DNA of 64,000 nt from IMGVR_UViG_3300046003_007892:124001-188000, one strand, 5' to 3'; numbered from the stretch's first letter, positions 24,635 to 44,641 are shown. A program made the numbers and translations. Notes: generated by a model not told the origin, from the sequence alone.

Positions 24635-24909
24635 AGAAAACCACCTACGAGTATGGGGTCCACGAGACCAATGCGGAGGCCTGTCAGTTCGTGGTCTGCT
24701 TCCCGGTACGCCGACATGCAGGGCGTCACTGGGGCGACCGCAAGCTGATCATGAAATGGCTGCGCAACAACGCCCCCAAGGGCAGCTACCTCACGCCGTC
24801 GCACAACTTCCGCAACGAAGCCGGGGAAGAAATCTGGATGGTTCGCGTTGAGACCTTCACGCTCGCCACCGCCCTCTACTTGGTCTTCGGTGAAGGTTTC
24901 GGCGGGTAG
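24631..24909 (+). CDS. Hypothetical protein (small-family-like)
   Basis: LIMKWLRNN...VRVETFTLATALYLVF. Confidence 0.6.
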   Translation: MKKTTYEYGVHETNAEACQFVVCFPVRRHAGRHWGDRKLIMKWLRNNAPKGSYLTPSHNFRNEAGEEIWMVRVETFTLATALYLVFGEGFGG

Positions 24910-26570
24910 ACGGAGTCCACGATCTTCTTCAGAACGCCGCCGTGGCGGTCGTAGGCGCACGCGCCGATAGCACTCGTTCGGTCCAGCTTCTGGACGGCCA
25001 TCTTCATCTGCGCTGGCGTGAATTCCTTCTGCGGCATGTAGCCGACCATCTGCATCCGGTTGTAGGGCTCAAGCTTGTCCAGGAAATTTAGGAAGATCGG
25101 CATCGGGATGCGGTTGGCCTCATAGGAGGCATAATACTTTCTCGCGAACATTTCGACGTCGTGATCGAGTGTCGCTTGCAGGATAAACGGCGGGACGTCG
25201 CCGGGACCACCAGTCCAGGATTCAAGAACGTGGGGGTCGCGGGCAATCAGGGTTTCCATGTTGGCTTGGCTCATCCGCAGGCCCTGGTAATATTTTCTGA
25301 ACTTCTCGTGGTTCTGGAGAATGAACTGCTGAACTCCAGCGGACAGCTTGCGGCCGACTGCGCGGCGAGGCGTCTCTGAGATGATCTCGATCACCTGCTT
25401 GTCTCCAAACGGAGCGATGCTCATGATGAGATTGTCAGTCTCCCCCATGGCGCACAACGGGTCAGCCATGATGCGGTCCTGCACGGACTTCGGAAGATCG
25501 CTCCACTGTATACCATTGTTGCCCAGACCGGACAGCACGATAGACGACGTGTAGAGGAATGAGATGATCTCATCGTCGGACAGTTTGCCTTGCCGCATCT
25601 GGTTGATGAAAATCTGCGGCTTGGCCGACCAGATTGCACGGTTGGACTTCGGCTCGTTGCCTTCGTAGCGGTTATTGACCGTCTGGAGGAGCTTGATGCC
25701 CTTCATGGACATGAAGACAGCCTGCGAGGGCTCGTTCTCGTGGATGATGCCCTGGCCCTCGTGCTTGGACCAGTCGTAGTCCAGGACGCCGTCGTAGCCC
25801 ATCTTGCGAAGAATCTTGTTCCAGTCCAGAGACGGGTTGAGGCTTTCTTCGTCGTCGGCCCAAGAATTCTGGGTCTCGTATTCGTCGAGGTCGCGATGAT
25901 ATTGCTCTACCGCCCCCGCGTGGGTCTCCAGTGCCTCTTCCCATTCGTCTTCGCTGTCGAAGTCCTCGTATTCTGGCTCGTCGGGCCATTCCGGGCGGGT
26001 CAGGTCGGGGTCCACGAGACGCATCTTCGTTTTTTCGAGTGCGGCCTTGTAGAGAACATTCCACAGGGCGCCGCCCTCGGTATCTACGGGGAGATCGTCA
26101 TCCGGGACTTCGTTGAACTCCGAAGATGCGTAGCGGACATCCGATACGCTCACCTTGGCGAGGTCGAGAACATTCAGCGACGGGCTGATCTCGAATACCT
26201 GGATGTATGGAGCCGTGGAAGCGAACTCGACGCCGCCTTTGCCCTTATGGAGCACGTAGTCGATAGGGTAGGCGTAGATGCCCAGCGGTGTCCGATAGCT
26301 GGACTGGGGGTTGATGCCCAGTTTGGCTCCACGGGTATTGTGGGTCTTACCGGATGCGCCCGAGACGCCGCCGTCGCGGAAGTTCTTGCCTTCGATCTTG
26401 CCGCCGTAACTGCCAGCCTTGCCCATATGGGTCAGGTTGCCGACGTCTTCCGTGTAGGAGACGAACACGTCCTTTCGGCCCTCGTAGGGACGAAGCTGAT
26501 CTTCAATCGAACGCTTGAAGTTCTGGTCGGGATTCCGTCGCTGTTCGAGGAGGATTTCGTGGAAACGCAT
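24876..26570 (-). CDS. Putative internal head protein with ART-like motifs and acidic insert
   Basis: MRFHEILLE N-terminus; PLGIYAYP, GYDGVLDY, GIIHENEPSQAVF; CTAAATA 4 nt upstream of ATG. Confidence 0.75.
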   Translation of the reverse strand: MRFHEILLEQRRNPDQNFKRSIEDQLRPYEGRKDVFVSYTEDVGNLTHMGKAGSYGGKIEGKNFRDGGVSGASGKTHNTRGAKLGINPQSSYRTPLGIYAYPIDYVLHKGKGGVEFASTAPYIQVFEISPSLNVLDLAKVSVSDVRYASSEFNEVPDDDLPVDTEGGALWNVLYKAALEKTKMRLVDPDLTRPEWPDEPEYEDFDSEDEWEEALETHAGAVEQYHRDLDEYETQNSWADDEESLNPSLDWNKILRKMGYDGVLDYDWSKHEGQGIIHENEPSQAVFMSMKGIKLLQTVNNRYEGNEPKSNRAIWSAKPQIFINQMRQGKLSDDEIISFLYTSSIVLSGLGNNGIQWSDLPKSVQDRIMADPLCAMGETDNLIMSIAPFGDKQVIEIISETPRRAVGRKLSAGVQQFILQNHEKFRKYYQGLRMSQANMETLIARDPHVLESWTGGPGDVPPFILQATLDHDVEMFARKYYASYEANRIPMPIFLNFLDKLEPYNRMQMVGYMPQKEFTPAQMKMAVQKLDRTSAIGACAYDRHGGVLKKIVDSVYPPKPSPKTK

Positions 26571-26574
26571 CCAC

Positions 26575-26581
26575 TATTTAG
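26575..26581 (-). promoter_or_regulatory. Late promoter, leaderless configuration
   Basis: CTAAATA-GTGG-ATG; the TAA is also the stop of 26578..26994. Confidence 0.7.
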
Positions 26582-26994
26582 ACCGGGTCGCTGACCTCGA
26601 ACGAGTCGAAAATAAAAACGAGACGGTGAACCTGGGGGTTGCCGTCCATGGTGTTCATATTCATGTCGGTGACCGCGTGCGTGTAGAGACGGCAGCCGAG
26701 AAAGTTTCTCGTCGCCCCCTTCTCTCTCTTGCCCTGCCGATTGATATTGTGGGGCGTCATTCGAACCGCGACTTTGCTGGCCTCGTCATTGGAACCTCGG
26801 GACGACGCCATGCGGCCGATCATCCTGACGATGCGTCCGTCGAGATCATCGGCGGCAGCTAGCCAAACCCGATGAGCGGTGAGATCAAATCCGATTTCGT
26901 GGACATGGTTGGCCCAGATGCTCGGCTCATCGGCCAGCATGAGCATCATTCCAGTCACATCCACCACGAACCTGTTGGACGCGGTTCTGGTCAT
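26578..26994 (-). CDS. Hypothetical protein, paralog of 26991..27464
   Basis: RFVVDV...HRLVFIFDSFEV aligns by eye with its neighbour. Confidence 0.7.
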   Translation of the reverse strand: MTRTASNRFVVDVTGMMLMLADEPSIWANHVHEIGFDLTAHRVWLAAADDLDGRIVRMIGRMASSRGSNDEASKVAVRMTPHNINRQGKREKGATRNFLGCRLYTHAVTDMNMNTMDGNPQVHRLVFIFDSFEVSDPV

Positions 26995-27464
26995 CGGCCG
27001 CCCTTGCGGAGCTTGATCGGTTTCGTCTTCGGCAAACGGACCTCGAACAGCCCGTAGGTGAACGTCAGACGATGCGAGATCATGACCCGCTCGGATTCAT
27101 AGTCGCGCCTCATCGGCGTGATGCGGTCGTGCCGTTTCAGCACGAGATCGCTGAACACCTTGGTGTGCCCCTCTGTGAATTCGTCCGGGTCACCCTTGAC
27201 CGAAATCGTGAGCCCGTCTGGACAGTGGAGGCGCGACATCATCATGGCCACCTGACCATGGCGGTCCTCCGAGACGGTGAACCTTACGGTTTTCTTCGCG
27301 ACGTTGAAGTGGATGTTCCACACGAACCGACCGATATCTTCGCAGTCGTTGAGGGCCAGGAAGACCGAGTTGACGGTGACCTCGAAGTCTTGGTTGAGGG
27401 CCGTGAAATCGTCATCCTCTCCAAGAAAATGTTCGTCCTCGGGGTCGTACTTGTAGACGCTCAC
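26991..27464 (-). CDS. Hypothetical protein, paralog of 26578..26994
   Basis: DFEVTV...HRLTFTYGLFEV. Confidence 0.7.
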   Translation of the reverse strand: MSVYKYDPEDEHFLGEDDDFTALNQDFEVTVNSVFLALNDCEDIGRFVWNIHFNVAKKTVRFTVSEDRHGQVAMMMSRLHCPDGLTISVKGDPDEFTEGHTKVFSDLVLKRHDRITPMRRDYESERVMISHRLTFTYGLFEVRLPKTKPIKLRKGGR

Positions 27465-28072
27465 GCGCCCTTCTCCCCATGGATGGCTTTCACGAGGGCC
27501 ATCTGCGTGGTGAGCAGATGCTTGATGTTCTCGTAGGCGGCCTCCTGGTCGGGGAAGAGGCGACGAGCCTTCTTGATCATCGGCAGGAAGAACTCCTCGC
27601 CCTCAGCCACGTAGGCGAGTTGTTTCTTGGCATTGAAAACGCCCACCATGGAGTTGAAGTTGTGGCCCCGGTCGGCGCCCTTGCCGATGCTCGCATAGGG
27701 GTCTTGAGCGATGCTGGCGAAAACCTCGGTAGGGTTGCGTTTGACGCCCTTGAACTCCTTGGTCATCGCCCAGACAGAGGTCGCGACATCCTCGCCGAAG
27801 CGGCGGGCCTGTTCGTCGCGCGCAATCCCATAGTCTTCGGAGACGTCGTGGAGGAGACAGACCGTCAGGGTCTTCTCCATGTCGCGCAGCGCGGGCAGGG
27901 TGCGGACGTAGTGGCAGATCGCGATCTGATGACTGAACTCCGGCGTGACGCCGTCCTTGCGGAAGCCATTGTGATGGAAAGCTGCGAACTCCATGGCCTC
28001 TAGGGCGAGGTTGTAGCCTCGACCCAGAAGCCAGTATCGGAGGGCGATTTCTTGTTTCTTGAGAGGGTCCAT
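27461..28072 (-). CDS. HD-domain RelA/SpoT-type hydrolase (Mesh1/small alarmone hydrolase-like)
   Basis: AAFHH.G.RKDGVTPEFSH, LLHDVSED, KGADRGHN. Confidence 0.88.
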   Translation of the reverse strand: MDPLKKQEIALRYWLLGRGYNLALEAMEFAAFHHNGFRKDGVTPEFSHQIAICHYVRTLPALRDMEKTLTVCLLHDVSEDYGIARDEQARRFGEDVATSVWAMTKEFKGVKRNPTEVFASIAQDPYASIGKGADRGHNFNSMVGVFNAKKQLAYVAEGEEFFLPMIKKARRLFPDQEAAYENIKHLLTTQMALVKAIHGEKGA

Positions 28073-28102
28073 GACTTCATGATGGCTCCTTACTCAGGAT
28101 TG

Positions 28103-28789
28103 TCAAGAAGAAGGAGCATCAATTCCCGCAAGTCTGGCAAGAATTTCGCAGTCGCCTACGTTGACCTCGACCAGACCCATTGCTTCGGTGCGGTCAGCGA
28201 AGCATTTGTTCGCAGCTTCGGCCACAGCGACACCCGCATCGCGCTTGCCGTTGTCATATCCCTTGCCTTGTCCGAAGTGATGACCGAGGCCGAACATGAC
28301 GGCGCAGACGAACGTCAGAAGGAGTATGCTGCTGACGATCTCAACCACGCTGTGCTCGCCGGGTTTCTTGACGACGGGCTTGGGCTTCGGGGCATTGGTG
28401 ACGAGGGCGGCAGCCGGTGACACAGCCTCATTGAGGATTTGGCGAGAGCCGGAAAGACCCAGTCGATCACCTAGAGGGCTGTAGCCGTCGCTGATCAACG
28501 GCGCGATCAGACGAAGCTTGTTCAGTTTATCGATTCGGCTGTTTTCCAGTTTGGTGACGTCGAGGAGACCGCGCTCGACCGCAAACGACGTGGCGCCGAG
28601 AACATCACCGATCTCGTCGTGGATGAGGTCCAGGTTGGTCCTCTTCGATTTGTCGTCGGGATTGTAGGAGTCGTAGCCGTGGCGGAGGGTCTTGCCGATG
28701 ATCTGCACGACTTCGCCGCACTCTTCTGACAGGACGCCGATCTCGTATTGATGAGCAAGTTTCTCGGGATGGGGATGACGATTGGACAA
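28103..28789 (-). CDS. MazG-like NTP pyrophosphohydrolase fused to a C-terminal TM region
   Basis: LSEECGEVVQIIGKTLRHG...DEIGDVL; then SILLLTFVCAVMFGLG. Confidence 0.8.
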   Translation of the reverse strand: MSNRHPHPEKLAHQYEIGVLSEECGEVVQIIGKTLRHGYDSYNPDDKSKRTNLDLIHDEIGDVLGATSFAVERGLLDVTKLENSRIDKLNKLRLIAPLISDGYSPLGDRLGLSGSRQILNEAVSPAAALVTNAPKPKPVVKKPGEHSVVEIVSSILLLTFVCAVMFGLGHHFGQGKGYDNGKRDAGVAVAEAANKCFADRTEAMGLVEVNVGDCEILARLAGIDAPSS

Positions 28790-28842
28790 AATATGACCTA
28801 GTGGGACGTGGTTATAGGTCTGTTGCTGTCCCTCAATACGAC

Positions 28843-28867
28843 AAAAGACCGGGGATTAACCCCGGCC
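28843..28867 (-). terminator. Intrinsic terminator
   Basis: GGCCGGGG-ttaat-CCCCGGTC-TTTT on minus strand. Confidence 0.8.
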
Positions 28868-28909
28868 TTATGGTAACCGATAGGGTTCGGCAGAGCCGAA
28901 TTAAATCGA

Positions 28910-29218
28910 TCAGACGGCGCGCAGCGTCGGCGTTGTTTTGCCGCGTTGAATGCCGAACGGTTCTCCCGCGACCTGAAGGGCCTGCTTGGCGGTTTGCAGC
29001 GCGGCGAGGGCCTCGCCGATTTTGTTGATCTGGATGGTCTCCAGTCCAGCCCGCGTCTTCGACAGCGCAGTCAGGCGCGTGATCGAATCGTTGACGACCA
29101 GCAGGTTGCTCGTCAGTTCCTGTTCCAGGAGAGCAGGCAGGGACTGCGAGATCGAATTGATCTGGTCGATCACCGAGAGATCGGTTGTCGGGGCGACAGA
29201 TGCGGGAATTGCGGACAT
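28910..29218 (-). CDS. Small coiled-coil-like protein downstream of the large ncRNA
   Basis: GAGGAGG SD; L/I/A/Q-rich heptads. Confidence 0.75.
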   Translation of the reverse strand: MSAIPASVAPTTDLSVIDQINSISQSLPALLEQELTSNLLVVNDSITRLTALSKTRAGLETIQINKIGEALAALQTAKQALQVAGEPFGIQRGKTTPTLRAV

Positions 29219-29284
29219 GGGTTCCTCCTCAGGAATTTCACAGGATGGTCACAGAATATCCGGTTTCCCAAATTTGGAAAGGTT

Positions 29285-29938
29285 TTTTTCGGACTACGAG
29301 ATGTCCGACTGTCGTCGTCCATCTGCTTCTGTTCGTCTCACTCGCAAGCTCGTTCGCTTGAACATCAGCAATTCAGACACTTAAACAAACAAGTCATCAT
29401 CCCTAGATCGCGAAGCATCACTTTTATCCCCCTATGATTCTGGAGGTCCCCATAGGGGCAGAATCATAGAAGGAAAAGTAATCAGACACCCTGAGTCGGC
29501 TCATGACCAGCCACATCAGCCGCGATGTCGTTTTACGGACGGCTGGCGGTTCCCCGCTACCAGCATGAGCGGCCCAATCCCGGCGAGCTTACTATGGTGA
29601 ACGAGACCTCAGCTTGTTCCTCTGGATATCGATCAGGTCGATTTAATCCCCAGGAGCCTATGTCTCAGCGTGCTATTTTTGTGCCGAACGGTTATGGAAT
29701 TGCTTCCAAGCTTACACGGAGGGCGATGGGCGGACCCCACGTGCACGGATAGACGTCAAGCGTTAGACGTAGCTATCCTCTTTGTTTAAGTGCCTTTTCG
29801 CGAATACGAACTCCGCCGAGGGGCTGACCGCTGGGAAGCAAATCACCTCACTGGTCGTCCTACCCTGTAGCCGGTCATTCTTCCCGACTTTCAGTGTTGA
29901 GGCGGGCATCACCTCTAGTAGCCCTGGACGCGCTATGT
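29285..29938 (-). ncRNA. Unidentified ~650-nt highly structured RNA
   Basis: Own promoter; no credible ORF; 12-bp long-range helix 29378-89/29781-92; 11-bp helix 29432-42/29459-69 extended by G-U only on the minus strand; GGAA and GCAA GNRA loops; G(CUUG)C loop with tandem GA pairs. Confidence 0.8.
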
Positions 29939-29945
29939 AGGGGTA

Positions 29946-29975
29946 ACTATAGAATCGAATCCTCGGAGTCGTCAA
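29946..29975 (-). promoter_or_regulatory. Sigma70-type promoter for the large ncRNA
   Basis: TTGACG-N18-TATAGT. Confidence 0.75.
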
Positions 29976-29993
29976 ATAGAATCAGAGGTTGTA

Positions 29994-30803
29994 TTAGCGG
30001 CACCCCATGGCGCGTCTATACTGTGCGAAGTTTGCTTGCACCCATTGGATTACTACGCTCATGTCGTCGTTCACGAACAGAGGCCGCAATCCCCTGTTCT
30101 GGTTTTTGTTTATCACCTTCCAGGTCCCGCCATCGTTGGCGATGAAGACGATATCGCGGGGGTCAACGTCTGCTCCCCAGAACACGATCTGTTCTTCCTG
30201 ATCGCCGTGGTGGTCACACTTGACGCCTGAGTTCATGAACATGACGGCCTCTCGCCCATACTTGCTGCCGCTGTCGGCATTGCGGTAGTTGGCGTCGTAG
30301 GCGAAATTGTAGCCGCCGTGCTTTTTTGCCTCGTCTGAGAACCACGTAGTCAGCCCGAGCTTGTCCATCTCGTCCATTCCGTACTTGAAACCATAGAGGG
30401 AGATTTCGCGGGCGTTGTCCGAAAAATGGATGAGCCACGTCGTGCGAGGAATCAGGCGATCTTTCCCGAGTGTCATGTGGGCGGTGGTCGGGGCATCGGC
30501 CGGGTCGTGGTGCAAGATCGTACCGATGATATCCTGGGCGCATTCTTTCTGGATGTGCTCGGGGAGCTTGTAGAAAAAATCGGCATCATACGTGATGGAG
30601 TTGGCGAGATCGTTCCAGGTGACCTCTTCGCCCGCCGCCTCATTGGTCTCGTCGGGATAGTTGTCCACGAGCCATGACGCGATATGACTCCAGTGCTGGT
30701 AGGGGTCGAAATCTCCACCCTTCATGTACTGGAGGAAATTCGTGTTGTCGGGAGAATACTTCTCCATCACGGACTCGGCGACGATTTCGAAGTAGGTTTT
30801 CAT
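29994..30803 (-). CDS. Putative internal head protein, ART-like C-domain
   Basis: MKTYFEIVAE resembles the T4 capsid-targeting sequence; WLIHFS...NFAY...DQEEQIVFW; ATAAATA 5 nt upstream. Confidence 0.75.
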   Translation of the reverse strand: MKTYFEIVAESVMEKYSPDNTNFLQYMKGGDFDPYQHWSHIASWLVDNYPDETNEAAGEEVTWNDLANSITYDADFFYKLPEHIQKECAQDIIGTILHHDPADAPTTAHMTLGKDRLIPRTTWLIHFSDNAREISLYGFKYGMDEMDKLGLTTWFSDEAKKHGGYNFAYDANYRNADSGSKYGREAVMFMNSGVKCDHHGDQEEQIVFWGADVDPRDIVFIANDGGTWKVINKNQNRGLRPLFVNDDMSVVIQWVQANFAQYRRAMGCR

Positions 30804-30808
30804 CCACC

Positions 30809-30815
30809 TATTTAT
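30809..30815 (-). promoter_or_regulatory. Late promoter, leaderless configuration
   Basis: ATAAATA-GGTGG-ATG. Confidence 0.7.
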
Positions 30816-30850
30816 TGACTGGCCGGGCCCGGTTGTCCTATCGCTCCCGT

Positions 30851-31261
30851 ATGAACATGTCATTTGAGAGCCACGGCTTCACCTACCTGATCGGGCACCC
30901 GATCACCAAAATCGAAATCGGCAACTCGGGTGCCTATCTGCGTCTGACTGCCTTCGGCGTCGAGTATGCATTCGGAGCCTTCGGTGACTGCTGCTCGCAT
31001 AGTTGGATTGAGCACATCGACGGCGTCGCCGCTTTGCATTCTGGAATCGTTGAGGTCGAAGAAGTCACCCAGACCGTAGACGAGAAAGACAACCGGGACG
31101 AACTCGTTCAGGTGTATTTCTACAAGCTCATTACTGCGCTCGGAAATGTCACCATCGAGATGCGGAATGCCAGCAACGGCTACTACGGTGGCTGGCTGGA
31201 GACTTGCCCGCACGGCACTCCAAAGGACGTCGTGTGGAAGACCATCACGGAGGATTTCTGA
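30851..31261 (+). CDS. Conserved phage hypothetical protein
   Basis: GDCCSHSW...EMRNASNGYYGGWL. Confidence 0.75.
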   Translation: MNMSFESHGFTYLIGHPITKIEIGNSGAYLRLTAFGVEYAFGAFGDCCSHSWIEHIDGVAALHSGIVEVEEVTQTVDEKDNRDELVQVYFYKLITALGNVTIEMRNASNGYYGGWLETCPHGTPKDVVWKTITEDF

Positions 31262-31530
31262 TGCTAACCGCGAGTGATCGTGCCCTCCAACTCGCCTTGC
31301 TGGTTCTCGTCGTCCCATACGCGATTTTGTGTTGGGTGGTGGCTCCATGCTTCCTGCTTTTTGCCGCGATAATAACGCTCGGCGCCGCCTTGCTCGACCG
31401 GTGCGGCTTCGAAGAGTTCTCCGGGATGTTCATCGTCACGCTGTTTGTCGTCACATCGCCGTTCCGCTTCGTGTTCGACCGAATCTACGCAGCCGTGTTG
31501 GGTCGCGAACACGAGTGGAAGTTTCACTAA
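31261..31530 (+). CDS. Hypothetical membrane protein
   Basis: Two or three hydrophobic helices; TGATG coupling. Confidence 0.65.
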   Translation: MLTASDRALQLALLVLVVPYAILCWVVAPCFLLFAAIITLGAALLDRCGFEEFSGMFIVTLFVVTSPFRFVFDRIYAAVLGREHEWKFH

Positions 31531-31533
31531 ATA
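31527..31533 (+). promoter_or_regulatory. Late promoter, leaderless configuration
   Basis: CTAAATA-TGGA-ATG; the TAA is the upstream stop. Confidence 0.7.
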
Positions 31534-31537
31534 TGGA

Positions 31538-32122
31538 ATGCGTCTGACCGAACTCTCTATCCCGCACGACCGCGAAGAACTCTCGCTGGAACTCATGGTC
31601 GCAGGCTACAGTCCGTTGGGTTCCGGCGACTTCGCCGATGTCTACCACAAGCCCGGCGCCGCCTACGTCCTAAAGGTTTTCGAGCCTCGCGACGAAGCCT
31701 ATCGGGCATTCCTGACCCTGGCCCGCTCCCATCAGGACAACCCGCATTTCCCGAAGATCATCGGGAAGCTCGTAAATATCAAAAACAAATGGTTCGCTGT
31801 TCGGCTCGAAAAGCTGGAGCGGTATCGCTACGACAGCACTCTGATCTACCGCTACATTCGCTGGCGGGATGAGCGAGGCAAGCATGACCCGCAGGGTATG
31901 TTCGCGATGGAACTCGAAGACGCGTTCGAGTTCATGGAGGAATACCCGAAACTCCAAGAAGCATGCGATCTCATCATCGACAATCTCCTCACGCAGGGCG
32001 GCCAATCCCTGGCCGGTCATGTGCCGGATTTCCGTCAGGACATCCGCAACGACAACATCATGATGCGGGGAAATACCATCGTGATCGTTGACCCTATCGT
32101 GCCCAACAAAGAGATGAAGTAG
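31538..32122 (+). CDS. Protein kinase-like fold enzyme, putative head cargo
   Basis: LGSGDFADVY, VLKV, DIRNDNIM (DxxxxN), IVIVDP; MRLTE N-terminus. Confidence 0.8.
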   Translation: MRLTELSIPHDREELSLELMVAGYSPLGSGDFADVYHKPGAAYVLKVFEPRDEAYRAFLTLARSHQDNPHFPKIIGKLVNIKNKWFAVRLEKLERYRYDSTLIYRYIRWRDERGKHDPQGMFAMELEDAFEFMEEYPKLQEACDLIIDNLLTQGGQSLAGHVPDFRQDIRNDNIMMRGNTIVIVDPIVPNKEMK

Positions 32123-32132
32123 CGGATAGAAG

Positions 32133-32160: not shown

Positions 32161-32161
32161 C

Positions 32162-35705: not shown

Positions 35706-35709
35706 AGCC

Positions 35710-37183: not shown

Positions 37184-38766
37184 CCGAGACTGTAGTCATC
37201 CTCGCTGCGGGATACGGGAGCCGCATGGGACCCTACGCGGACAAAATCGCCAAGACCCTCTTGCCGGTCGGCCAGAAAGCTGTGGTGAGTCACATCATCG
37301 ACCGCTTCGACCCCCAGACCCATTTCGTGATCGCGGTCGGTCATCTCGGGACGCAGATCAAATCCTATATCGCGATGGCGCACCCTCGGCTCAACGTCAC
37401 CTTCGTGGACGTCGATATCACTGCGGCGCCCGACTCCACTTTCGGACCAAACGCGGCCGGTCCCGGCACCACCCTCTTGGCCTGTCGCCCCGACCTCGGT
37501 GAAGGCCCGTTCTTTCTCGTGACCGGAGACACCCTGTTCGAACTTCCCGCCGACCTGACGGGCAACTGGGTTGGCATTCAGCACGTCGATGATCAGACCG
37601 AATACTGCAATGTCGTCCTCGACGGCGACATGGTCATAGAGGTGGCGGACAAGGTCGAGAAACCAGGAAGCATGGCCTGGACTGGTCTTGCCCACATCGA
37701 AGATCACAGCTTCCTCGACAAGCTCGACTACGCGTCAAACACCGGCCTTCCGCCTAGCGTGGTCAGATGGTTGAACGTGCGGACCAACCAGGAGAACTCC
37801 CTCTCGCGGGGTATCCGCCACCTGACCGATATGGGCACCCTCAAAGGACGTTGCCATGAGTGGTCGGACACGGGCACCTATGCGAAATACCGAGCAGTCG
37901 CAGGGGCAGAGGGGACATTCGCCTTCGAGAAAGAGGGTGAGTTCCTCTATCGGGTCGGAGATAGAATCGTAAAATATTTTGAGAATCCCAAGATTGCCTA
38001 TGATCGCGTCTGCAAGGCGACCATGCGGGAGGACGTCTTCCCCAAGATCGTCGGCTCCAGTGGGTCCTTCTATGCATACGAGTTCGTCCCCGGCCGGACC
38101 CTATACGAAGGTCTGACGCCGGGGCGTTTCATTGAACTCACCCTCTTTCTTCACGACCGGGTCTGGGACCCCAACGGCGACCCCGTGCACCCAACGCTCG
38201 TTCATGATTTCTATGTCCGCAAGACTGAAGCTCGTCTCGCGGCCTTCATGGAACGGAACCCCGATTTCGAAGAGGCCGAGTGCGTTAACGGTTTCGAAGT
38301 CAGACCCATCGCGGAACTCCTTCTGACCATTCCCGCGCACGAGGGCGTGAAGTCTTTCATCCACGGTGATTTGCAGTTCGACAACATCATCGACGACGGA
38401 ACAAAGTTCACCCTGATTGACTGGCGGCAGGATTTCGCAGGCCGGGTCGAGTACGGCGATCTCTACTACGATTTCGCAAAACTCCTGGCTGGCATATGGG
38501 TGGATTTCAGAGCCGTGAAAACCATTCAGCCAACCGTGGACGGTGGTCGAACGACAACCCTGTCATGCTTGCCGTCGATTGGTAACACGCTCGCCTACGC
38601 GTCGATTCTACAGGCAGCGGCGGCGCGGTATGATCTGGATTTCGCTGTCGTGAAAAAAATCACCGGCCTCATCTACTTGAATATGGCGGGACTCCACAAC
38701 AATCCGCTAGACTTGTATTTCTACAGTCTAGCTCAAGTGGTCCTCTCCGGTTATGATCTCGCGTAA
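37180..38766 (+). CDS. Nucleotidyltransferase + APH/choline-kinase-like fusion
   Basis: ILAAGYGSRM...KTLLPVG; IHGDLQFDNII...LIDWR...GDLYYDFAKL. Confidence 0.88.
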   Translation: MTETVVILAAGYGSRMGPYADKIAKTLLPVGQKAVVSHIIDRFDPQTHFVIAVGHLGTQIKSYIAMAHPRLNVTFVDVDITAAPDSTFGPNAAGPGTTLLACRPDLGEGPFFLVTGDTLFELPADLTGNWVGIQHVDDQTEYCNVVLDGDMVIEVADKVEKPGSMAWTGLAHIEDHSFLDKLDYASNTGLPPSVVRWLNVRTNQENSLSRGIRHLTDMGTLKGRCHEWSDTGTYAKYRAVAGAEGTFAFEKEGEFLYRVGDRIVKYFENPKIAYDRVCKATMREDVFPKIVGSSGSFYAYEFVPGRTLYEGLTPGRFIELTLFLHDRVWDPNGDPVHPTLVHDFYVRKTEARLAAFMERNPDFEEAECVNGFEVRPIAELLLTIPAHEGVKSFIHGDLQFDNIIDDGTKFTLIDWRQDFAGRVEYGDLYYDFAKLLAGIWVDFRAVKTIQPTVDGGRTTTLSCLPSIGNTLAYASILQAAAARYDLDFAVVKKITGLIYLNMAGLHNNPLDLYFYSLAQVVLSGYDLA

Positions 38767-39223
38767 GCCCCAGCATCTCATCTTCGACGTCGATGGCGTA
38801 TTCACTGACGGGAAGTTCTACTACACCGCTGACGGCAAAGTCATGAAGGCGTTCTGCTGCCAGGATAGCGATGGTCTCAGAGACCTCATGGGCGAGTTCA
38901 ACATCCATCTCATCACCGCCGACAAGAACGGCTTCGAAATCTCTCAGGTGCGGGCCAAGGATATGGGATTCCCCATCCATCTGGTCCCCAACGCAGACCG
39001 TGCCGCGCACGTTGCCCACTACGTCAAGTTCGGTGGTGCGATCTTCATGGGTGACTCGATGACGGACATCCCGGCCCTCAGGGAGGCCACCTACGCCATC
39101 GTCCCCAAACAGTCCCGCATCGAAGTCCGCGATGAAGCCGACTACGTGACCGCCTACGCTGGCGGAGAGGGCGCCGTCTTGGACGCCTGCCTGCATCTGA
39201 AAGAGAAGTTCCGAGCCCGCTAA
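38753..39223 (+). CDS. KdsC/YrbI-family HAD sugar-phosphate phosphatase
   Basis: IFDVDGVFTDG, KAF...D..G, FMGDSMTD. Confidence 0.88.
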   Translation: MISRKPQHLIFDVDGVFTDGKFYYTADGKVMKAFCCQDSDGLRDLMGEFNIHLITADKNGFEISQVRAKDMGFPIHLVPNADRAAHVAHYVKFGGAIFMGDSMTDIPALREATYAIVPKQSRIEVRDEADYVTAYAGGEGAVLDACLHLKEKFRAR

Positions 39224-39226
39224 ATA
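39220..39226 (+). promoter_or_regulatory. Late promoter, leaderless configuration
   Basis: CTAAATA-TGGC-ATG; the TAA is the upstream stop. Confidence 0.7.
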
Positions 39227-39230
39227 TGGC

Positions 39231-39740
39231 ATGCGATATGCCGAACTGAGCGAGAAGTGGGTTGGGGCCGTCAAGACCAAATGGTCCAACGATCACATCG
39301 ACCTCTACATGGACCCGTCGCGGGCTGAGTTCATGAAACTCATGAAGGAATGGGGCACCGCCGCCCGCGCACTCGTGTCCACGCAGGGCAACCTTCTTTT
39401 CTGGCATATGGACCAAGCCCTCCACAGCGAGGCCGCAATGTCGATTGAAGGTCACGCCTGGGTCCCCGCCCATCTTGTCCTGTATCCGCCCGGCAACGAA
39501 TGTTCGATCATCATCAACGAGTTCGAGAACTTCATGTGGGATGACGACTTCGATGACGCCAACGGCGGTGGCTATAAACCCCTGCTGACCCGCGTCGTCT
39601 CGACCCTTCAGGCCAACGAGCATCTCCAGCGCATCTACGGCACGGTCGAACTCTGGGGTCTCGCCGAAGACCGTGGTCTCGACAATCCCTACATCGCCAT
39701 CACGCCGGAATGGCTGGCTGCCAACGTGGTGAAGAAATGA
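39231..39740 (+). CDS. Putative internal head protein (domain shared with 41296..42525)
   Basis: MRYAELSE; LYMDPS...ARAL...FW...ALH. Confidence 0.7.
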   Translation: MRYAELSEKWVGAVKTKWSNDHIDLYMDPSRAEFMKLMKEWGTAARALVSTQGNLLFWHMDQALHSEAAMSIEGHAWVPAHLVLYPPGNECSIIINEFENFMWDDDFDDANGGGYKPLLTRVVSTLQANEHLQRIYGTVELWGLAEDRGLDNPYIAITPEWLAANVVKK

Positions 39741-40294
39741 AGTTCGACGACATCCTCCTCCATGAAGCGGTCGGCGACGACTACCTCTATCACGGCACCG
39801 ACTGCGACAACGCCGAGAGCATCCTGCACGCCAACGTCCTGCGCGGAGAGACCGATCACCATTCCACCACCCTGATGCCCATCAAGGGTTTGAACCGGGC
39901 CCACCCCCTGCCATTCCGGGCCAAGGAGGTCGAGCAGAACGGCCGAGTTTGGGGAGTGTCGCTGACCAGGAGCCTGAGGTTCGCCCGGCAGTGGACATCC
40001 GGCTGGGGTGCCGTCTTCGTCCTAGATCGGAAGAAGCTGGCAACCCGTCATCGGTTCGTCCCCATCGACTACGACAAGAATCGCCGCGAGGCCGAGGAGT
40101 TCCTTCTCGGGAGCATCGAGAGCCTTGATGACTTCCTGGTCCGCATCGAGATCAGCGGCGAAGCACACGAAACCCTTCTGGAAGCCAACGAGGATTTTCT
40201 CGACGGTCAGAAGCCCAACGAACTTCTCCTCGCGCACCCCAAGCTTGTCGTGGTCGGCAAGGCGTGGAACATCAATGGGATGGTGAATACCTAG
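39737..40294 (+). CDS. ART-like putative head protein
   Basis: MKFDDILLHE; YLYHGT, VSLTRS..FA, EAEEF. Confidence 0.65.
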   Translation: MKFDDILLHEAVGDDYLYHGTDCDNAESILHANVLRGETDHHSTTLMPIKGLNRAHPLPFRAKEVEQNGRVWGVSLTRSLRFARQWTSGWGAVFVLDRKKLATRHRFVPIDYDKNRREAEEFLLGSIESLDDFLVRIEISGEAHETLLEANEDFLDGQKPNELLLAHPKLVVVGKAWNINGMVNT

Positions 40295-40596
40295 TCGCGA
40301 GGCGGCACATAGAAGCCGTAGCGAATGCGCTCCCGGCGAATTTGCTCGTCGGCCATCGCCTGCTCGTCGTTGAGGTCTTTGTAGATGCCCCAGCGAAGAA
40401 CCCGCCACATTCCACTACCGAGTTTCTCGACCATCGCCTGAGCTTCCTCCTGCGAGCAGAAGCCAGCATAGACGGAGTTGGTCCCGGCACCAACGACGTA
40501 GATGCCGTTGCGGTCCTGCCACTCGGTCCAGGTCCCCTTCACGATCTTGTCGTTCGGGGTCATGCTCTGTTCGACGATGTCTATGATTTCGCGCAT
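40291..40596 (-). CDS. Hypothetical protein with head-cargo-like N-terminus
   Basis: MREIIDIVE. Confidence 0.65.
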   Translation of the reverse strand: MREIIDIVEQSMTPNDKIVKGTWTEWQDRNGIYVVGAGTNSVYAGFCSQEEAQAMVEKLGSGMWRVLRWGIYKDLNDEQAMADEQIRRERIRYGFYVPPRD

Positions 40597-40603
40597 ACCG
40601 CCT

Positions 40604-41299
40604 TTAAGCAGTGTAGGTAATATTTGTCAAGTTAATAGGTTTCTCATTGAGGAGATCGTATCTCTCGATCACGCTCTGAACAAACAGGGGAGAACCCTTG
40701 AGGACGCGAAGTTCGTATTCGTTCTCGCCGGTTTCCCAATCCATCCCGGCCATGATGGTGTGGTGCCAGTCAATGTGGGATGGGTCTACGACGGCGTGGA
40801 TGACCACGTTGACGCCTTCGGACTTGAGATCGCTCCAGACGGGTTCGAAATCCCAAGCATGGGGGTCGTAGGTCCAGTAGATGCCCAAGCTGGTCTGGCC
40901 GATGCGCTGGACGGTAGCCGCCCAGTTGGTCGGGACCTTCATGATGCGGTGGATGGAATACAGGCCGGAATGTTTCTCAATAGCGGTCAGGCGTGCGATG
41001 ACCTCGTCGTAGCGATTGTCGCACCACCACATCGCAAACGCACGGAACTCCGGCGTATCCTGGACGTCGATATCTTCCATGTCCGCGAATTGATCGGGGA
41101 ACGGATAGTTGAAATCACCCTCTCGCCAGTATTCAATCATGCGTGCGCCATTGTCGGAACCCTGGAACTTGCCCGGATAGGCCGCATGCGCTTGATCATC
41201 CCAGAAGAGACCCTGAACGAGGCTGTCCGTCATCTTGGCGCAGATGGCAGCCTTGTCCGTGGCGCCGACGCTTTCCGCGAGCGTGATCAAATGTCTCAT
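40604..41299 (-). CDS. ART-like putative head protein
   Basis: MRHLITLAE; IHRIM, SLGIYWT, ENEYEL. Confidence 0.65.
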   Translation of the reverse strand: MRHLITLAESVGATDKAAICAKMTDSLVQGLFWDDQAHAAYPGKFQGSDNGARMIEYWREGDFNYPFPDQFADMEDIDVQDTPEFRAFAMWWCDNRYDEVIARLTAIEKHSGLYSIHRIMKVPTNWAATVQRIGQTSLGIYWTYDPHAWDFEPVWSDLKSEGVNVVIHAVVDPSHIDWHHTIMAGMDWETGENEYELRVLKGSPLFVQSVIERYDLLNEKPINLTNITYTA

Positions 41300-42525
41300 C
41301 GGAACTCGTAGGGACGCAGTCCCGAGAAGAGTTTCTTGAAGGCCGGGTTGGCGAGCATCTGAGCGGCCGAGTGCTTCGGCACGTAGACGAACACGTCGCC
41401 GGTCGTGAAGAAGGCCATCTTGGAAGTTCCGCCGATTTCGCCCGCCGCATCGCCGAGGAGTTTGTCGAAGTCCGTGGCGGCCATGAAGGGAGCAACGGTG
41501 GTGATGTCGTCGGTCATCTGACGGTAAATCTGTTGGTGGATGGCTGAGTTGGCGTCCCAGATATAGACCGACGCCCCGAACGTGACGCCACGGACGAGGC
41601 CGTATTTGGCGTTAGCGATGAGGCTCCTGGTCGTGTTCGGTGTGGGGTCGATATGAACGATGACTTCGCGGTCCCGGACATCGAACTTCTCCATCCGTTC
41701 CGTCAGGGGGCGAGCCGATTTTCGCAACATCAAATCGCTGTCGGCGTCGAACTCAAATCCGAGACGTTCATACCAGCTTTCAAGATCGATCTGGCCGAGC
41801 GCATTCGTGTTGTCGTCCTCGGCGTTTCCGAACTCGACATCCGATCTAGGGAACAACTCCAGGTCCACGCTGAGTTGATCAGCCGTCCGCATAAGGTCGG
41901 TCATGATCTGGCGACCCTTCCCATCATGGCGTTCGCCAGCCGGAACATGGAGCCATCGAATTTCTACGGTGTCGTGGTTGAGCGCAATGAGCTTCAGGTT
42001 GCTGCGGTGATATTTTTCCGCCATCGCCTTGATGAGCGCAGCAGCGTTGCCGGTGTTCTCGATCAGGGAGCGTTTCATCTCCTCAGAGACGTCGATGATG
42101 CGCGGATTGAACATTCGCTGGAACGCCGGGTTGCCCATCAGGTCGCCCTCGGCACCAGCGGCGACATAGAAGAAACCGACCTCGGGGTCTTCGATGAAGG
42201 TGAAGAAGTTGGCCTTCTCGTATTCCCGACGCGCATCATCGACCACCGTTTGGAGATCAAAGCCCATCATGAACAGGCGGACCTCGTGGAACTGGTCTGT
42301 AACCTGACGCCAGATGTCGGCGTGGATAGCCTTGCTGGCATCCCAGAAGAAAATGTCGTTGTTGACCGCAAAGCCACGCACCATGCCGAACTGCGCATTG
42401 GCCAGCAGGGCTTCCAGCGTGTTCGCGGTTGGATTGCTGTGCACGACAACGTCGCGGCCACGAACATCAAACTGTTCGGCGCGCTCCGTGAGGTCGGACT
42501 CAGCGAGAGATATGAACTGACGCAT
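41296..42525 (-). CDS. Putative head polyprotein: repeat domain - GNAT - repeat domain
   Basis: MRQFISLAE; WLHVPAGERHDGKGRQIM...WYERLGF (GNAT); two copies of LTER..FDVR.R.V.VH..PT.NT...L.ANA..G.VRG. Confidence 0.78.
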   Translation of the reverse strand: MRQFISLAESDLTERAEQFDVRGRDVVVHSNPTANTLEALLANAQFGMVRGFAVNNDIFFWDASKAIHADIWRQVTDQFHEVRLFMMGFDLQTVVDDARREYEKANFFTFIEDPEVGFFYVAAGAEGDLMGNPAFQRMFNPRIIDVSEEMKRSLIENTGNAAALIKAMAEKYHRSNLKLIALNHDTVEIRWLHVPAGERHDGKGRQIMTDLMRTADQLSVDLELFPRSDVEFGNAEDDNTNALGQIDLESWYERLGFEFDADSDLMLRKSARPLTERMEKFDVRDREVIVHIDPTPNTTRSLIANAKYGLVRGVTFGASVYIWDANSAIHQQIYRQMTDDITTVAPFMAATDFDKLLGDAAGEIGGTSKMAFFTTGDVFVYVPKHSAAQMLANPAFKKLFSGLRPYEFR

Positions 42526-43064
42526 TACTCGTCTTCATGCCACGTCTGGGGATTGCCGTAGAAATGGCGAATCTGTTGTGCATCAGCGGGGTCCTGCATG
42601 TCAAACACTGCTTGACGGGACAGTCCCTCGACGTTCTTCAACCATCCATCCACGATGAAGCGATCATCTACCACGGCGAAGGCGTGACCGTCGCAATAGT
42701 CGGCCAGCGCGGATTCGTCGTTGTCCTCATAGTTGATTCCGCCTGCGCCATGCATCCAGAACCCCATTTTCTTGGCTCGCTCCGGTAGGGCGGCGACAAC
42801 GAAGCGGGCCCAACTATCACAGAACACGGCGGGGCCATGGTCTCCCATGACGTGTTGCCCGCCGCCCATGGCGTCGTATTCTTCATCGGAAAGATCATTG
42901 ATCTCGGGGGTGGACTCGTCGTGATCATCGAACTCGATGCTGTTTGGATAGTTGGACTCATCTCCGAAATAGTCTTCGAGTTCGGCCTTGACCTGGAGGG
43001 CCGTCTTAGGAGGCGTGGCGTCTCGGTGGCGAGCCATGGCTTCGAGGAGGTTGGCGTATCTCAA
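42525..43064 (-). CDS. Putative head protein
   Basis: TTG in TTGA overlap; RYANLLE; C...A...GHAF..VDD.FIVDGW could be a papain-like triad. Confidence 0.65.
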   Translation of the reverse strand: MRYANLLEAMARHRDATPPKTALQVKAELEDYFGDESNYPNSIEFDDHDESTPEINDLSDEEYDAMGGGQHVMGDHGPAVFCDSWARFVVAALPERAKKMGFWMHGAGGINYEDNDESALADYCDGHAFAVVDDRFIVDGWLKNVEGLSRQAVFDMQDPADAQQIRHFYGNPQTWHEDE

Positions 43065-43513
43065 CGGTTTTCTCCGATGCGGTCCCATAGGCCATCGAGT
43101 TTGCCACCGATGACCGTGCGGTAGAGGAACTGGTAGCCGTCGTCGCGGAGTTTATCGAAAGCCTGCACGTCTTCGTGCCGGTTATCGCAGATGAAATCTC
43201 CCCGGTCGGTGGTCACGCACAGGACGGCGTGACCCTCATTTTCTTCAGTCTTGCAGACAGTAAAGAGAAGCGCGGATGCGGGGAACCCCGCCTTGAGGAG
43301 CATGTCGAGTTTGTAGAGGGTGATGCCGTCACAATCCTCGATCTTGTCGCTAGCAACATCGCGCGGGAAATCCCAGCGTTCGATGACGCCCCAGGTCTCC
43401 TCGTCCGAGGTCCACACGACCTCATTGCCCAGACGATTGACGCGTCGGAGTTCAGCCCATGCCTTGGTGGTCAGGACGAGACGATTATTTCCATCAACGG
43501 TGTATTTCAGCAT
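43061..43513 (-). CDS. Transglutaminase-like cysteine peptidase (BTLCP/LapG-like)
   Basis: RVN...W...D...W...EDCDGITLYK...GHAVLCV.T..GD.ICDN. Confidence 0.85.
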   Translation of the reverse strand: MLKYTVDGNNRLVLTTKAWAELRRVNRLGNEVVWTSDEETWGVIERWDFPRDVASDKIEDCDGITLYKLDMLLKAGFPASALLFTVCKTEENEGHAVLCVTTDRGDFICDNRHEDVQAFDKLRDDGYQFLYRTVIGGKLDGLWDRIGENR

Positions 43514-43695
43514 TGTTCGAACTCCGGGTTGCGCTCGCAGAACTCTGTCGCCGCTGGGGGAGTTGTGACCCTGCCCTGCGTTTCCATGTGCTCAGCACAG
43601 GGCAGGCCGGGCTCTGGAGTGCAGTGATCGTATTTGGGTTGTTCAGTACAGCCCAAGACAAACAGCGTGGCGAGGATAGCAAAAGCAGCTTTCAT
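43507..43695 (-). CDS. Small lipoprotein
   Basis: MKAAFAILATLFVLGC lipobox; leaderless after CTAAATA. Confidence 0.75.
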   Translation of the reverse strand: MKAAFAILATLFVLGCTEQPKYDHCTPEPGLPCAEHMETQGRVTTPPAATEFCERNPEFEQC

Positions 43696-43700
43696 GCTGC

Positions 43701-43741
43701 TATTTAGACAAAGAAAATCCAGATAAGGTGGAGGATAAATA
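43701..43741. promoter_or_regulatory. Back-to-back late promoters
   Basis: TAAATA on minus strand at 43701-06 and on plus strand at 43736-41. Confidence 0.7.
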
Positions 43742-43769
43742 CCCAAAACACACCGTTTTGGAGAAACCA

Positions 43770-44267
43770 ATGTCTAAGAAACCCGCATGGCTCGAAGTAG
43801 CCGAACGTTACATCGGCACGAAAGAATATCCCGGCGCCGGAAACAACCCCGTCATCCTCCAGTGGGCCAGCAAGACCGCCCGCTTCCTCGGTATTTCCTA
43901 CAAACAGGACAGCGTGCCGTGGTGTGGCCTCTTCACTGCATTCTGCATCAACGAAGTAGGTCTGGTGCCGGTCAAGGTCGCGGTTCGCGCGTCCGAGTGG
44001 GCCAAGTTCGGCGTCGCCGTTCGGGAACCCGTTCTCGGAGCTATCGCGGTCTTCACCCGCGAGGGTGGTGGTCACGTCGGCTTCGTTGTCGGCCATGACG
44101 CCGACGCCCTGCACGTTCTCGGTGGCAACCAATCTGACGCCGTCAACGTCCAGCGTATCGCGAAGTCGCGCTGCTCTGCGATGCGCTACCCGGCCGGTCT
44201 CCCGACCCCGCGTCCGCTCGCACATTCGACCCTGGCTGATTCCCGTCTGAGCACCAACGAAGCCTAA
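43770..44267 (+). CDS. TIGR02594-family NlpC/P60-like peptidoglycan peptidase (endolysin candidate)
   Basis: WLEVA...GTKEYPG..NNP.I, PWCG.F, GGGHVGF, VLGGNQ. Confidence 0.9.
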   Translation: MSKKPAWLEVAERYIGTKEYPGAGNNPVILQWASKTARFLGISYKQDSVPWCGLFTAFCINEVGLVPVKVAVRASEWAKFGVAVREPVLGAIAVFTREGGGHVGFVVGHDADALHVLGGNQSDAVNVQRIAKSRCSAMRYPAGLPTPRPLAHSTLADSRLSTNEA

Positions 44268-44641
44268 TGCGCGATCTGATCAAGCTGGCCGAAGGCCTGC
44301 GGCTCCTGACCCTCTACCACGGCACCTGCGCGCACAACGCGAAGATGATCTGTAAGGATGGTTGGCAGCCGCATTCCGGGGCTCCCTACGGGGCCTCACA
44401 CGGCGGCCAGTCTGATTATCTCTACATGAGTACCGACGAGGAAGACGCTCTTTGGTTTGCCGAAGAGCAGGGCTGCACGACGGTCATTCAGGTCATCAAC
44501 GTCCCCATCGATTACTTGATAGTGGACCCCGAAGACGGTTGCTCTGAGACAGTCGAGGAAGAAATCTCGGGACCGTATCCGGGCAAGGTTGCTTTGACTC
44601 GCGCCCTTGGTCCCGAACACTTCATTCTTTCTCAGGTCTAA
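44267..44641 (+). CDS. ART-like putative head protein
   Basis: MRDLIKLAE; LYHGT, LYMSTD...A..FA. Confidence 0.65.
   Translation: MRDLIKLAEGLRLLTLYHGTCAHNAKMICKDGWQPHSGAPYGASHGGQSDYLYMSTDEEDALWFAEEQGCTTVIQVINVPIDYLIVDPEDGCSETVEEEISGPYPGKVALTRALGPEHFILSQV

Follow-up and report, generated by a model that had tools for sequence, protein, structure and literature searches.

The window analysed here is a stretch of 64,000 nucleotides (nt), bases 124001-188000 of the 240,363-bp IMG/VR record IMGVR_UViG_3300046003_007892. Between positions 24876 and 44641 it encodes ten proteins that share a short N-terminal peptide ending in glutamate, hereafter the tag, which resembles the capsid-targeting sequence (CTS) of phage T4. 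The original prediction, made from the sequence, had described about ten such N-termini on late proteins, mostly in TAAATA-driven units, and had proposed an arsenal of packaged and injected effectors. All ten peptides were found at the start codons of open reading frames (ORFs) of 101-564 amino acids (aa) at the predicted positions, each ORF having coding-type base composition at third codon positions (GC3) and coding-type codon scores, and all ten genes lie in units headed by a TAAATA box.

Tagged genes of the locus

Four of the ten genes have a TAAATA box of their own 4-5 nt before the ATG. Two are on the minus strand: the gene of a 564-aa protein (24876-26570), beginning MRFHEILLE followed by Q, with a box at 26575-26580, 4 nt upstream of the ATG at 26570; and the gene of a 269-aa protein (29994-30803), beginning MKTYFEIVAE followed by S, with a box at 30809-30814, 5 nt upstream of the ATG at 30803. 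The latter peptide is the closest to the T4 CTS MKTYQEFIAE. The other two are on the plus strand, one encoding a 194-aa kinase-like protein with the short and weaker tag MRLTE (31538-32122; box at 31528-31533, 4 nt before the ATG) and one a 169-aa protein beginning MRYAELSE followed by K (39231-39740; box at 39221-39226, 4 nt before the ATG).

The remaining six are downstream genes of TAAATA units, four of them with overlapping stop and start codons. The boxes, overlaps and unit structure bear out the start codons chosen in the original prediction. On the plus strand, a 185-aa protein (39737-40294), whose start overlaps the upstream stop (ATGA), begins MKFDDILLHE followed by A, with the motif LYHGT after it. 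A minus-strand unit running from 43695 to 40291 and headed by a box at 43701-43706 includes four tagged genes, encoding a 179-aa protein of no assigned function (42525-43064; LRYANLLE, read as (M)RYANLLE from a TTG start that overlaps the upstream stop as TTGA, followed by A), a 409-aa protein in which two copies of an unnamed domain flank a GNAT-like centre (41296-42525; MRQFISLAE followed by S), a 231-aa protein weakly matching phrog_35613, a family without known function (40604-41299; MRHLITLAE followed by S), and a 101-aa protein of no assigned function (40291-40596; MREIIDIVE followed by Q). The tenth gene (44267-44641, plus strand) encodes a 124-aa protein beginning MRDLIKLAE followed by G, again with LYHGT after it, and belongs to a unit headed by a plus-strand box at 43736-43741, 28 nt before the CHAP-domain gene 43770-44267.

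Distribution and form of the tag

Tag counts were based on a crude gene call of the whole contig, which gave 375 genes. The pattern ^M[RK].{2,6}[LI].E occurs in 31 of the 375 proteins, against 2.1 expected from internal positions, and a looser descriptor in 42 (11.2%), against 2.6% at internal Met residues. Most tagged genes lie outside 24876-44641. The estimate of about ten was thus accurate for the locus and understated the set, the ten being a local sample of some 30-40 tagged genes that reach far along this half-genome.

The tag consists of Met, Arg or Lys, an amphipathic stretch with hydrophobic residues near positions 4-8 and a terminal Glu at positions 8-10, after which there is usually a small residue (in 24 of the 42 proteins matching the loose descriptor it is Ser, Ala, Gly or Thr). 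Arg is the most frequent second residue (55 of the 375 contig proteins), and among the 42 genes a length of nine residues is commonest (16 cases; 8-10 residues in 28), the dominant form being the 9-mer MR-x-φ-φ-x-φ-x-E, where φ is hydrophobic. Codon 2 of the tagged genes is variously CGC (13), CGA (7), AGA (5), CGT (5), CGG (2), AAA (3) or AAG (1), and the Glu codon is GAA or GAG. Because the codons vary synonymously, the tag is conserved at the amino-acid level, and a recombination cassette conserved at the nucleotide level was rejected on the same grounds. The tag has no transmembrane or signal-peptide character. Beyond the tag, the proteins are mostly unrelated to one another in all-against-all BLAST, apart from one family of seven and a few pairs.

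TAAATA boxes and putatively leaderless genes

The window contains 17 TAAATA sites (2.9 expected), a count reached in none of 100 shuffles, and the contig 90 (about 39 expected). Downstream of 33 of the 90 contig sites, an ORF of 50 aa or more has its ATG at a distance of exactly 4 nt; for nine others the distance is 5 nt. The T4 late promoter is TATAAATA, and the TAAATA box fits a promoter of this type. The known position of the start site at T4 late promoters would place the transcript start at or beside the A of the AUG. Since a TAAATA-N4/5-ATG arrangement leaves no room for a Shine-Dalgarno site, this spacing, present at 42 genes, implies that many tagged genes are expressed from putatively leaderless or near-leaderless late mRNAs.

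The arrangement is strongly associated with the tag: a TAAATA box within 7 nt of the start is found at 21 of the 42 tagged genes and at 12 of the 333 others (Fisher 7e-15), and several of those 12 encode tag-like variants such as MDYAAFLFE and MRAHIDLAANILFE. Of the 42 tagged genes, 16 have no nearby TAAATA. The box also stands 24-30 nt before the genes of the ClpX-like ATPase, of a protein of at least 1000 aa and of others, leaving ordinary leaders. A useful control is the untagged virion gene immediately beyond the locus (44649-45983, plus strand), which encodes a tail/neck protein resembling T4 gp15 and beginning MIRELDYW, and which has a plus-strand TAAATA box (44639-44644) at the same N4 spacing before its ATG. 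In the related phage Phosso, the boxes lie 17-34 nt from the ATG and not 4-5 nt as on this contig, and none of 80 Phosso-like, protease-bearing loci kept from IMG/VR has the TAAATA-N4-ATG pattern. In L056, a 131-kb Logan contig of another lineage with a GC content of 42%, TAAATA stands 6 nt before the ATG of two tagged genes.

The tag as a separable module

The 564-aa protein (24876-26570) has 46 metagenomic homologues on contigs of up to 561 kb, which nearly all begin M[RK]xx[ED][IL]xE(A)RRNP and which, at about 30% overall identity, keep Met1 invariant and Glu9 at least 90% conserved. The 185-aa protein (39737-40294) has homologues in at least 246 clusters; of the 122 single-domain members of this family, 111 carry a hydrophobic-x-Glu tag at the start. 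The distance from the tag to the catalytic His varies between 8 and 18 residues in this family, and that from the Glu to the His peaks at 8-9 residues. Some members begin at the domain itself, for example with MAPLYHGT, and in multi-repeat homologues the matches begin at query residue 16 or later, past the tag. Two distant homologues, the metagenomic protein P0048 (2290 aa, nine repeats) and P0052 (735 aa), have six to nine matched stretches of the 185-aa domain. P0048 itself starts with the tag-like MKKVSPIIE.

AlphaFold2 (AF2) models render the first 10-20 residues as a low-confidence helix on otherwise confident domains. The predicted local distance difference test score (pLDDT) is 83 for the whole 564-aa model and about 50 for its residues 1-20, and 92.5 for the whole 185-aa model (predicted template modelling score 0.86) and only 53 for its residues 1-10. 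The occurrence of the tag on unrelated proteins, its absence from internal repeats, its variable distance from the His and its low confidence in the models together argue that it is a separable module.

Tagged proteins were also seen in L056, which represents another uncultured T4-like phage lineage: its genes at 8438-13053 and 19459-21242 comprise a group of large tagged proteins, one of which matches both ART-PolyVal and a T7 kinase, and three tagged proteins, two of them with an APLY(H/R) motif after the tag.

Predicted identities of the tagged proteins

The labels attached to this cargo by the original prediction (kinase, GNAT and ADP-ribosyltransferase (ART)-like) fared unevenly: the ART-like label held for 39737-40294 by its fold and for 44267-44641 by alignment and is suggested for 24876-26570, while GNAT and kinase identities are leads only. 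None of the ten proteins gave a usable Pfam match at an E-value of 5, and nine of them have no significant family match, the tenth matching only a PHROG kinase family.

The best Foldseek matches of 39737-40294 in the PDB are Tpt1/KptA (probability 1.0), NarE and DarT, and its profile matches DarT1 in the PDB with an E-value of 0.003. An alignment of 55 family members shows an invariant E120, with H19, S75, T77, R78, E118 and E121 conserved in 90% or more, in agreement with the NAD-site residues of ARTs (His in strand 1, an S/T motif and the catalytic Glu); in Pfam searches these 55 gave single weak matches only (Tpt1, NarE). The modelled fold confirms 39737-40294 as a predicted ART-fold protein. 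The 124-aa protein (44267-44641) can be aligned with this family, is 24% identical to the 185-aa protein and has LYHGT in common with it, and this family alignment supports its assignment as a putative ART-like protein. BLAST joins the 185-aa protein to one further copy on the contig, and at least two more tagged contig proteins show, by eye, an LYH motif after the tag.

The 564-aa protein combines an N-terminal alpha/beta domain with a C-terminal helical repeat. Foldseek with the whole model returned helical-repeat noise only. VIA-align with residues 31-305 gave structural matches at Z 4.9-6.5, below the safe level of the tool, in which the best neighbours were all ART-fold proteins (the cyanophage A4 pre-ejectosome protein, MbcT, ParT, RES toxins and diphtheria toxin), and Atlas leads pointed to ART-PolyVal/AcrIF11. 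These modelled similarities suggest that the N-terminal domain may be ART-like. The 269-aa protein (29994-30803) likewise has weak ART-like leads.

The GNAT lead for 41296-42525 comes from an Atlas feature match to GNAT clusters (0.92, 177 shared features), a structural template modelling score of up to 0.65 that is normalised on short targets, and a motif-A-like stretch, RHDGKGRQ, seen by eye. The unnamed domain of about 70 aa that occurs twice in this protein, and is attributed to five or six more contig genes besides this one and 39231-39740, has the pattern ..V.V..NP[ST]......L......RG........WDA..A[IL]H..I. The protein groups by BLAST with six other contig proteins, four of them tagged, as the family of seven. 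The same pattern was seen by eye in 39231-39740, which BLAST did not group with 41296-42525. The kinase lead for 31538-32122 comes from a match of residues 19-187 to phrog_15752 (T7-type protein kinase; E 1e-7) and, by eye, from a glycine-loop-like GSGDFADV followed by YVLKV, and DIRNDN; Pfam gave no match for this protein and the PDB no sequence match, and a T7 gp0.7-type kinase is a lead only.

Source contig and head module of its relatives

The source record has a GC content of 58% and an estimated completeness of about 45% (CheckV), and the window sequence also recurs in several lake-water metagenomes. Besides the tagged genes, the window has genes for subunits of a T4-type topoisomerase II, for a ClpX-like ATPase and for the gp15-like protein. 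The last of these matches phrog_11196 and phrog_227 and is 41% identical to a protein annotated as head-to-tail adaptor in Sinorhizobium phage Phosso (469 kb), 39.5% to its counterpart in Agrobacterium phage Atu_ph07 (490 kb) and 32% to those of the Pseudomonas PA5oct group, Rak2-like phages also being near. Because this protein is nearest to those of Phosso, Atu_ph07, PA5oct and Rak2-like phages, the contig probably represents a fragment of a T4-related megaphage of about 500 kb of the Atu_ph07 type. Megablast of the region and tblastn of the 269-aa MKTY protein found no match among 50,697 phage records, and a search of IMG/VR with the gp15-like protein found no close relative.

In T4, the ten N-terminal residues of internal protein IPIII, MKTYQEFIAE, are enough for entry into the prohead core; targeting is governed by residues 4 and 7, and processing by the protease gp21 by residues 8 and 10; Alt sheds a 7-residue N-terminal propeptide (PMC9026906). 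Alt is itself a packaged, N-terminally processed ART (PMC5512222, PMC9026906), and the CTS has been proposed as a general loading route for diverse proteins in T4-like phages (PMC9026906, PMC3012670). The likeness to the T4 sequence in the original prediction proved real: three contig proteins begin MKTYFEIVAE, MKTYADILVE and MKTYADIIVE, and thus keep Tyr4, hydrophobic residues at 7 and 8, and Glu10.

A Peptidase_S77 protein, the gp21 family, is present in both Phosso (94.6 bits) and PA5oct (85 bits), in a T4-like head module consisting of portal, small protein, core protein or proteins, protease, scaffold and major capsid protein. N-termini of φ-x-E type recur on the products of this module. 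In PA5oct they include the virion-detected MKINDIITE and the scaffold MTVKFEHILNE; in Phosso MRYNEFSKE...LSE, MRASELFE and ...FMNILNE; and in Phosso-like IMG/VR contigs MRFLEILRE, MKKTNLMDIMES and MKTVDLNKVLEM, with the scaffold MDNGLNSLLES and the capsid protein MTKLFES...ALCEG.

The virion proteome of PA5oct, whose GenBank record (MK797984.1) marks 93 of 461 proteins as virion-detected (a 20% baseline), gave an equivocal picture. With the strict regular expression 11 PA5oct proteins are tagged (2.7 expected), and five of the 11 are virion-detected, including proteins of 70-104 aa whose genes lie outside the structural modules, next to dihydrofolate reductase or among unrelated genes. This enrichment is suggestive and is not counted as support, because there is no significance with the loose descriptor or with a scoring matrix, for which the figures are given below. 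The virion-detected set also includes ribonucleotide reductase, thymidylate synthase, GTP cyclohydrolase, ClpP, FtsH, ligase and MazG. Either such metabolic and proteostasis enzymes are contaminants or many of them are packaged, so the set is a limited gold standard.

Interpretation of the tag

We consider the tag probably a T4-type capsid-targeting propeptide on an expanded set of late cargo that is packaged and injected, with a probability of roughly 55%. This is the best reading because of the MKTY likeness to T4, the presence of a gp21-type protease in the relatives and the φ-x-E N-termini of the relatives' core proteins. The context fits as well: promoters of late type precede the tagged genes, a gp21-type protease and a T4-like head module are present in the clade, and the tag stands on unrelated domains. 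Targeting, cleavage, packaging, ejection and the targets of the tagged proteins are steps that we infer. The tagged genes would be transcribed late from TAAATA promoters, many of them leaderless or nearly so; the tag would bind the scaffolding core of the assembling prohead; a gp21-type prohead protease would cut after the tag Glu; and the mature enzymes would remain with the DNA inside the head and pass into the next cell when it is infected. Such cargo would comprise ART-fold, GNAT-like and kinase-like proteins, together with others of unassigned fold, probably acting in anti-defence or host takeover.

Several results weigh against capsid targeting. The hydrophobic residues of the dominant 9-mer MRxφφxφxE are placed differently from those of the T4 10-mer, and all ten tagged proteins of the window are acidic (pI 4.4-5.7), whereas the abundant internal proteins of T4 are described as basic (PMC9026906). 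Searches of the contig with PF03420 (Peptidase_S77) and the Gp23 family found no gp21-type protease, scaffold or major capsid gene, an absence of data and not of the gene, as the contig covers about 45% of the genome. A motif scan of the Phosso genome gave 7 proteins against 4 expected and hence no tag expansion. In PA5oct, the loose descriptor marked 9 of 93 virion and 16 of 268 non-virion proteins (p 0.24), and a position-specific scoring matrix (PSSM) trained only on the present genome, at a 0.5% false-positive threshold, marked two virion and four non-virion proteins (p 0.47). Among the lake-water metagenomes no RNA run carrying the sequence was found. The profile of the ART family, moreover, matches the N-terminal end of E. 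coli DarT1 from residue 2 onwards, so that the tag helix could be partly structural in that family.

The last of these points underlies one of the alternatives, in which the tag is an ancestral structural helix of a single fast-evolving ART-like superfamily, kept by shared descent and not for sorting. Of the ten proteins, two are ART-like, in one case by fold, and weak ART-like leads exist for another two; the Glu-to-His distance peaks at 8-9 residues. The tag is nevertheless also found on the GNAT-like, the kinase-like and five other proteins without ART signals, multi-repeat matches start past it, some homologues lack it entirely, and it is modelled at low confidence, off the domain; we therefore regard common ancestry as improbable. 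A further alternative starts from the promoters: the first codons may be constrained for ribosome binding or early elongation on leaderless mRNAs, the tag being a by-product. That half of the tagged genes have a close TAAATA with no Shine-Dalgarno room, in so marked an association, speaks for this idea. It fails to explain why amino acids are kept while codons vary synonymously, why the tag is retained by the 16 of 42 tagged genes without a nearby TAAATA and by the six of ten window genes that are operon-internal, four of them overlapping, or why homologues elsewhere keep it behind ordinary leaders and Shine-Dalgarno sites (L056 gene 20140-20616, PA5oct, Phosso), and the gp15-like gene has equal promoter spacing and no tag. 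We accordingly give this constraint little credence.

Other functions can be imagined for a genuine sorting or handling signal. The tag might be recognised in regulated proteolysis or by a chaperone, for instance by the phage's ClpX-like ATPase, which would keep down the lifetime or activity of toxic enzymes in the cell that makes them. Among the N-terminal signals of ClpX, one class is Met-basic-hydrophobic-rich, the contig encodes both the ClpX-like protein (2199-3479) and a protein with a GroEL-like N-terminus (by eye), and the cargo look like potentially toxic enzymes; such a role leaves unexplained why the tag is nearly identical to the T4 CTS, why its conserved terminal Glu precedes a small residue and why the relatives' head-core proteins beside the prohead protease have N-termini of this pattern, and we think it unlikely. 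Equally long odds attach to a tag that directs proteins to another late assembly or place, such as the tail or baseplate, the membrane or a replication compartment. Some tagged genes do adjoin tail and lysis genes (gp15-like 44649-45983 and CHAP 43770-44267), while the T4 precedent and the core proteins in the relatives' head modules point to the prohead core, and the tag lacks transmembrane or signal-peptide character.

Capsid targeting can also be taken further than the reading favoured above. The sequence M-[RK]-x-φ-φ-x-φ-x-E could act as a zip code that marks as prohead cargo more than a tenth of the genes of a megaphage and hundreds of ART-like clusters in uncultured phages, coming in this lineage as a compact, leaderless promoter-AUG-tag cassette able to make any enzyme an injectable effector. 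This wider proposal is tentative, and we hold it to be somewhat less likely to be right than wrong.

Neighbouring genes and other features of the contig

The untagged neighbours of the tagged genes encode HD, MazG, an APH-like kinase, a transglutaminase-like cysteine protease and a CHAP-domain protein. The kinase-like protein is of the APH phosphotransferase family (37225-38766, plus strand; E 2.7e-10) and lies in mid-region. The cysteine protease (43061-43513, minus strand; Peptidase_C93 in Pfam, E 1.8e-29) belongs to the same late unit as the tagged genes of 40291-43064. The first gene of that unit after its TAAATA box is a 62-aa ORF (43507-43695, minus strand) with the hydrophobic N-terminus MKAAFAILATLFVL, which may encode a small membrane or secreted protein and which precedes the Peptidase_C93 gene and the four tagged genes.

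Elsewhere in the window lie the ClpX-like ATPase (minus strand), T4-type topoisomerase II (5863-9078, plus strand) and a protein matching a PHROG family annotated as tellurite resistance (55895-57064, plus strand). On the contig, 201188-202786 and 116350-120068 encode proteins whose N-termini resemble, by eye, GroEL and aminoacyl-tRNA synthetases, and this load of ClpX, topoisomerase II, GroEL-like and tRNA-synthetase-like genes is typical of very large phages. Outside the window, a 237-aa ORF (contig 104024-104737, plus strand) contains the short stretch VMPTKIASNIVGVSPM, a gp23-like fragment similar to a motif conserved at the N-terminus of major capsid proteins of T4 type (17.6 bits with the Gp23 Pfam family); the ORF is not a capsid protein.

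The 12-mer GTCAAGTAAATA occurs on the plus strand of the window at 11301-11312 and 12258-12269, with seven further copies on the contig (genome positions 23521, 35305, 64068, 69395, 70140 and 84429, and 195822 on the minus strand). It usually has CTT just before it, most copies have an ATAGAC-like hexamer about 15-20 nt upstream, and most do not adjoin any ORF start. The repeat may represent a second class of promoter or some regulatory site.

Comparison with known systems and implications

The arrangement recalls T4's IPI, IPII and IPIII internal proteins and Alt in having a short N-terminal tag that ends in hydrophobic-x-Glu on unrelated products of late genes, in the three contig proteins with MKTY and the matching residues 4, 7, 8 and 10, in ART-like cargo as in Alt, and in the gp21-type protease and T4-like head gene order of this phage's clade. 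It differs in scale, half a genome here holding about 30-40 such genes and T4 only a handful, and in form: here a 9-mer of MR type, acidic enzyme-like cargo and apparently leaderless genes, known from sequence, and in T4 a 10-mer on small basic proteins.

Phages of the phiKZ type package many head-internal proteins whose propeptides are cut after Glu by a gp21-related protease and which are ejected (PMC9026906, PMC5694885, PMC7411985). Those systems, with phiKZ gp175 and SPN3US gp245, belong to a different lineage from the Atu_ph07/Phosso/PA5oct/Rak2 group considered here, and no uniform start-of-protein tag was found described for them, unlike the situation on this contig.

The ARTs of polyvalent proteins have also been predicted to be packaged and injected effectors (Iyer et al. 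2017, PMC5512222). Likeness to ART-PolyVal (PF18760) is seen in the ART fold, in the multi-repeat giants among the homologues of the 185-aa protein and in the neighbour of one homologue, which matches ART-PolyVal. Unlike polyvalent proteins, those of the window are mostly single-domain "solo" proteins (one or two domains), each with its own tag and below Pfam thresholds; several unrelated effector domains per polypeptide were not found in them, and only distant homologues are multi-repeat. The 185-aa protein (39737-40294) shares with DarT, Tpt1/KptA and NarE its fold, a conserved His in LYHGT, and S-x-T and E-x-E-E stretches, and differs from DarT, Tpt1 and NarE in its marginal similarity (0.003 being the best E-value), in having no antitoxin partner and in its late phage context.

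What is already known, therefore, is the CTS with gp21 and variable cargo in T4 and close relatives, and the mass packaging of cleaved ejection proteins in phiKZ-like phages. What is new is the scale (about a tenth of genes), the 9-residue MR form, the enzyme-rich and ART-heavy cargo, and the coupling to seemingly leaderless late promoters. No paper was found on a CTS-like tag or its expansion in the Atu_ph07/PA5oct/Rak2 group, and the PA5oct paper makes no mention of propeptides.

The T4 CTS has already been used to load foreign proteins into T4 heads. If the favoured reading is true, the T4 capsid-targeting principle would extend to a distant clade of very large phages, with dozens of natural variants of the tag, and the apparent leaderless late promoters would represent an unusual use of the T4-type late promoter. 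A simple sequence rule would then serve to list proteins injected by huge uncultured phages before any of their genes are expressed. Proteins of this kind are hard to detect by homology and are likely to include new anti-defence and host-takeover enzymes, of which several here are predicted to have an ART fold. On the wider zip-code proposal, the injected anti-host arsenals of huge uncultured phages would become readable directly from metagenomes.

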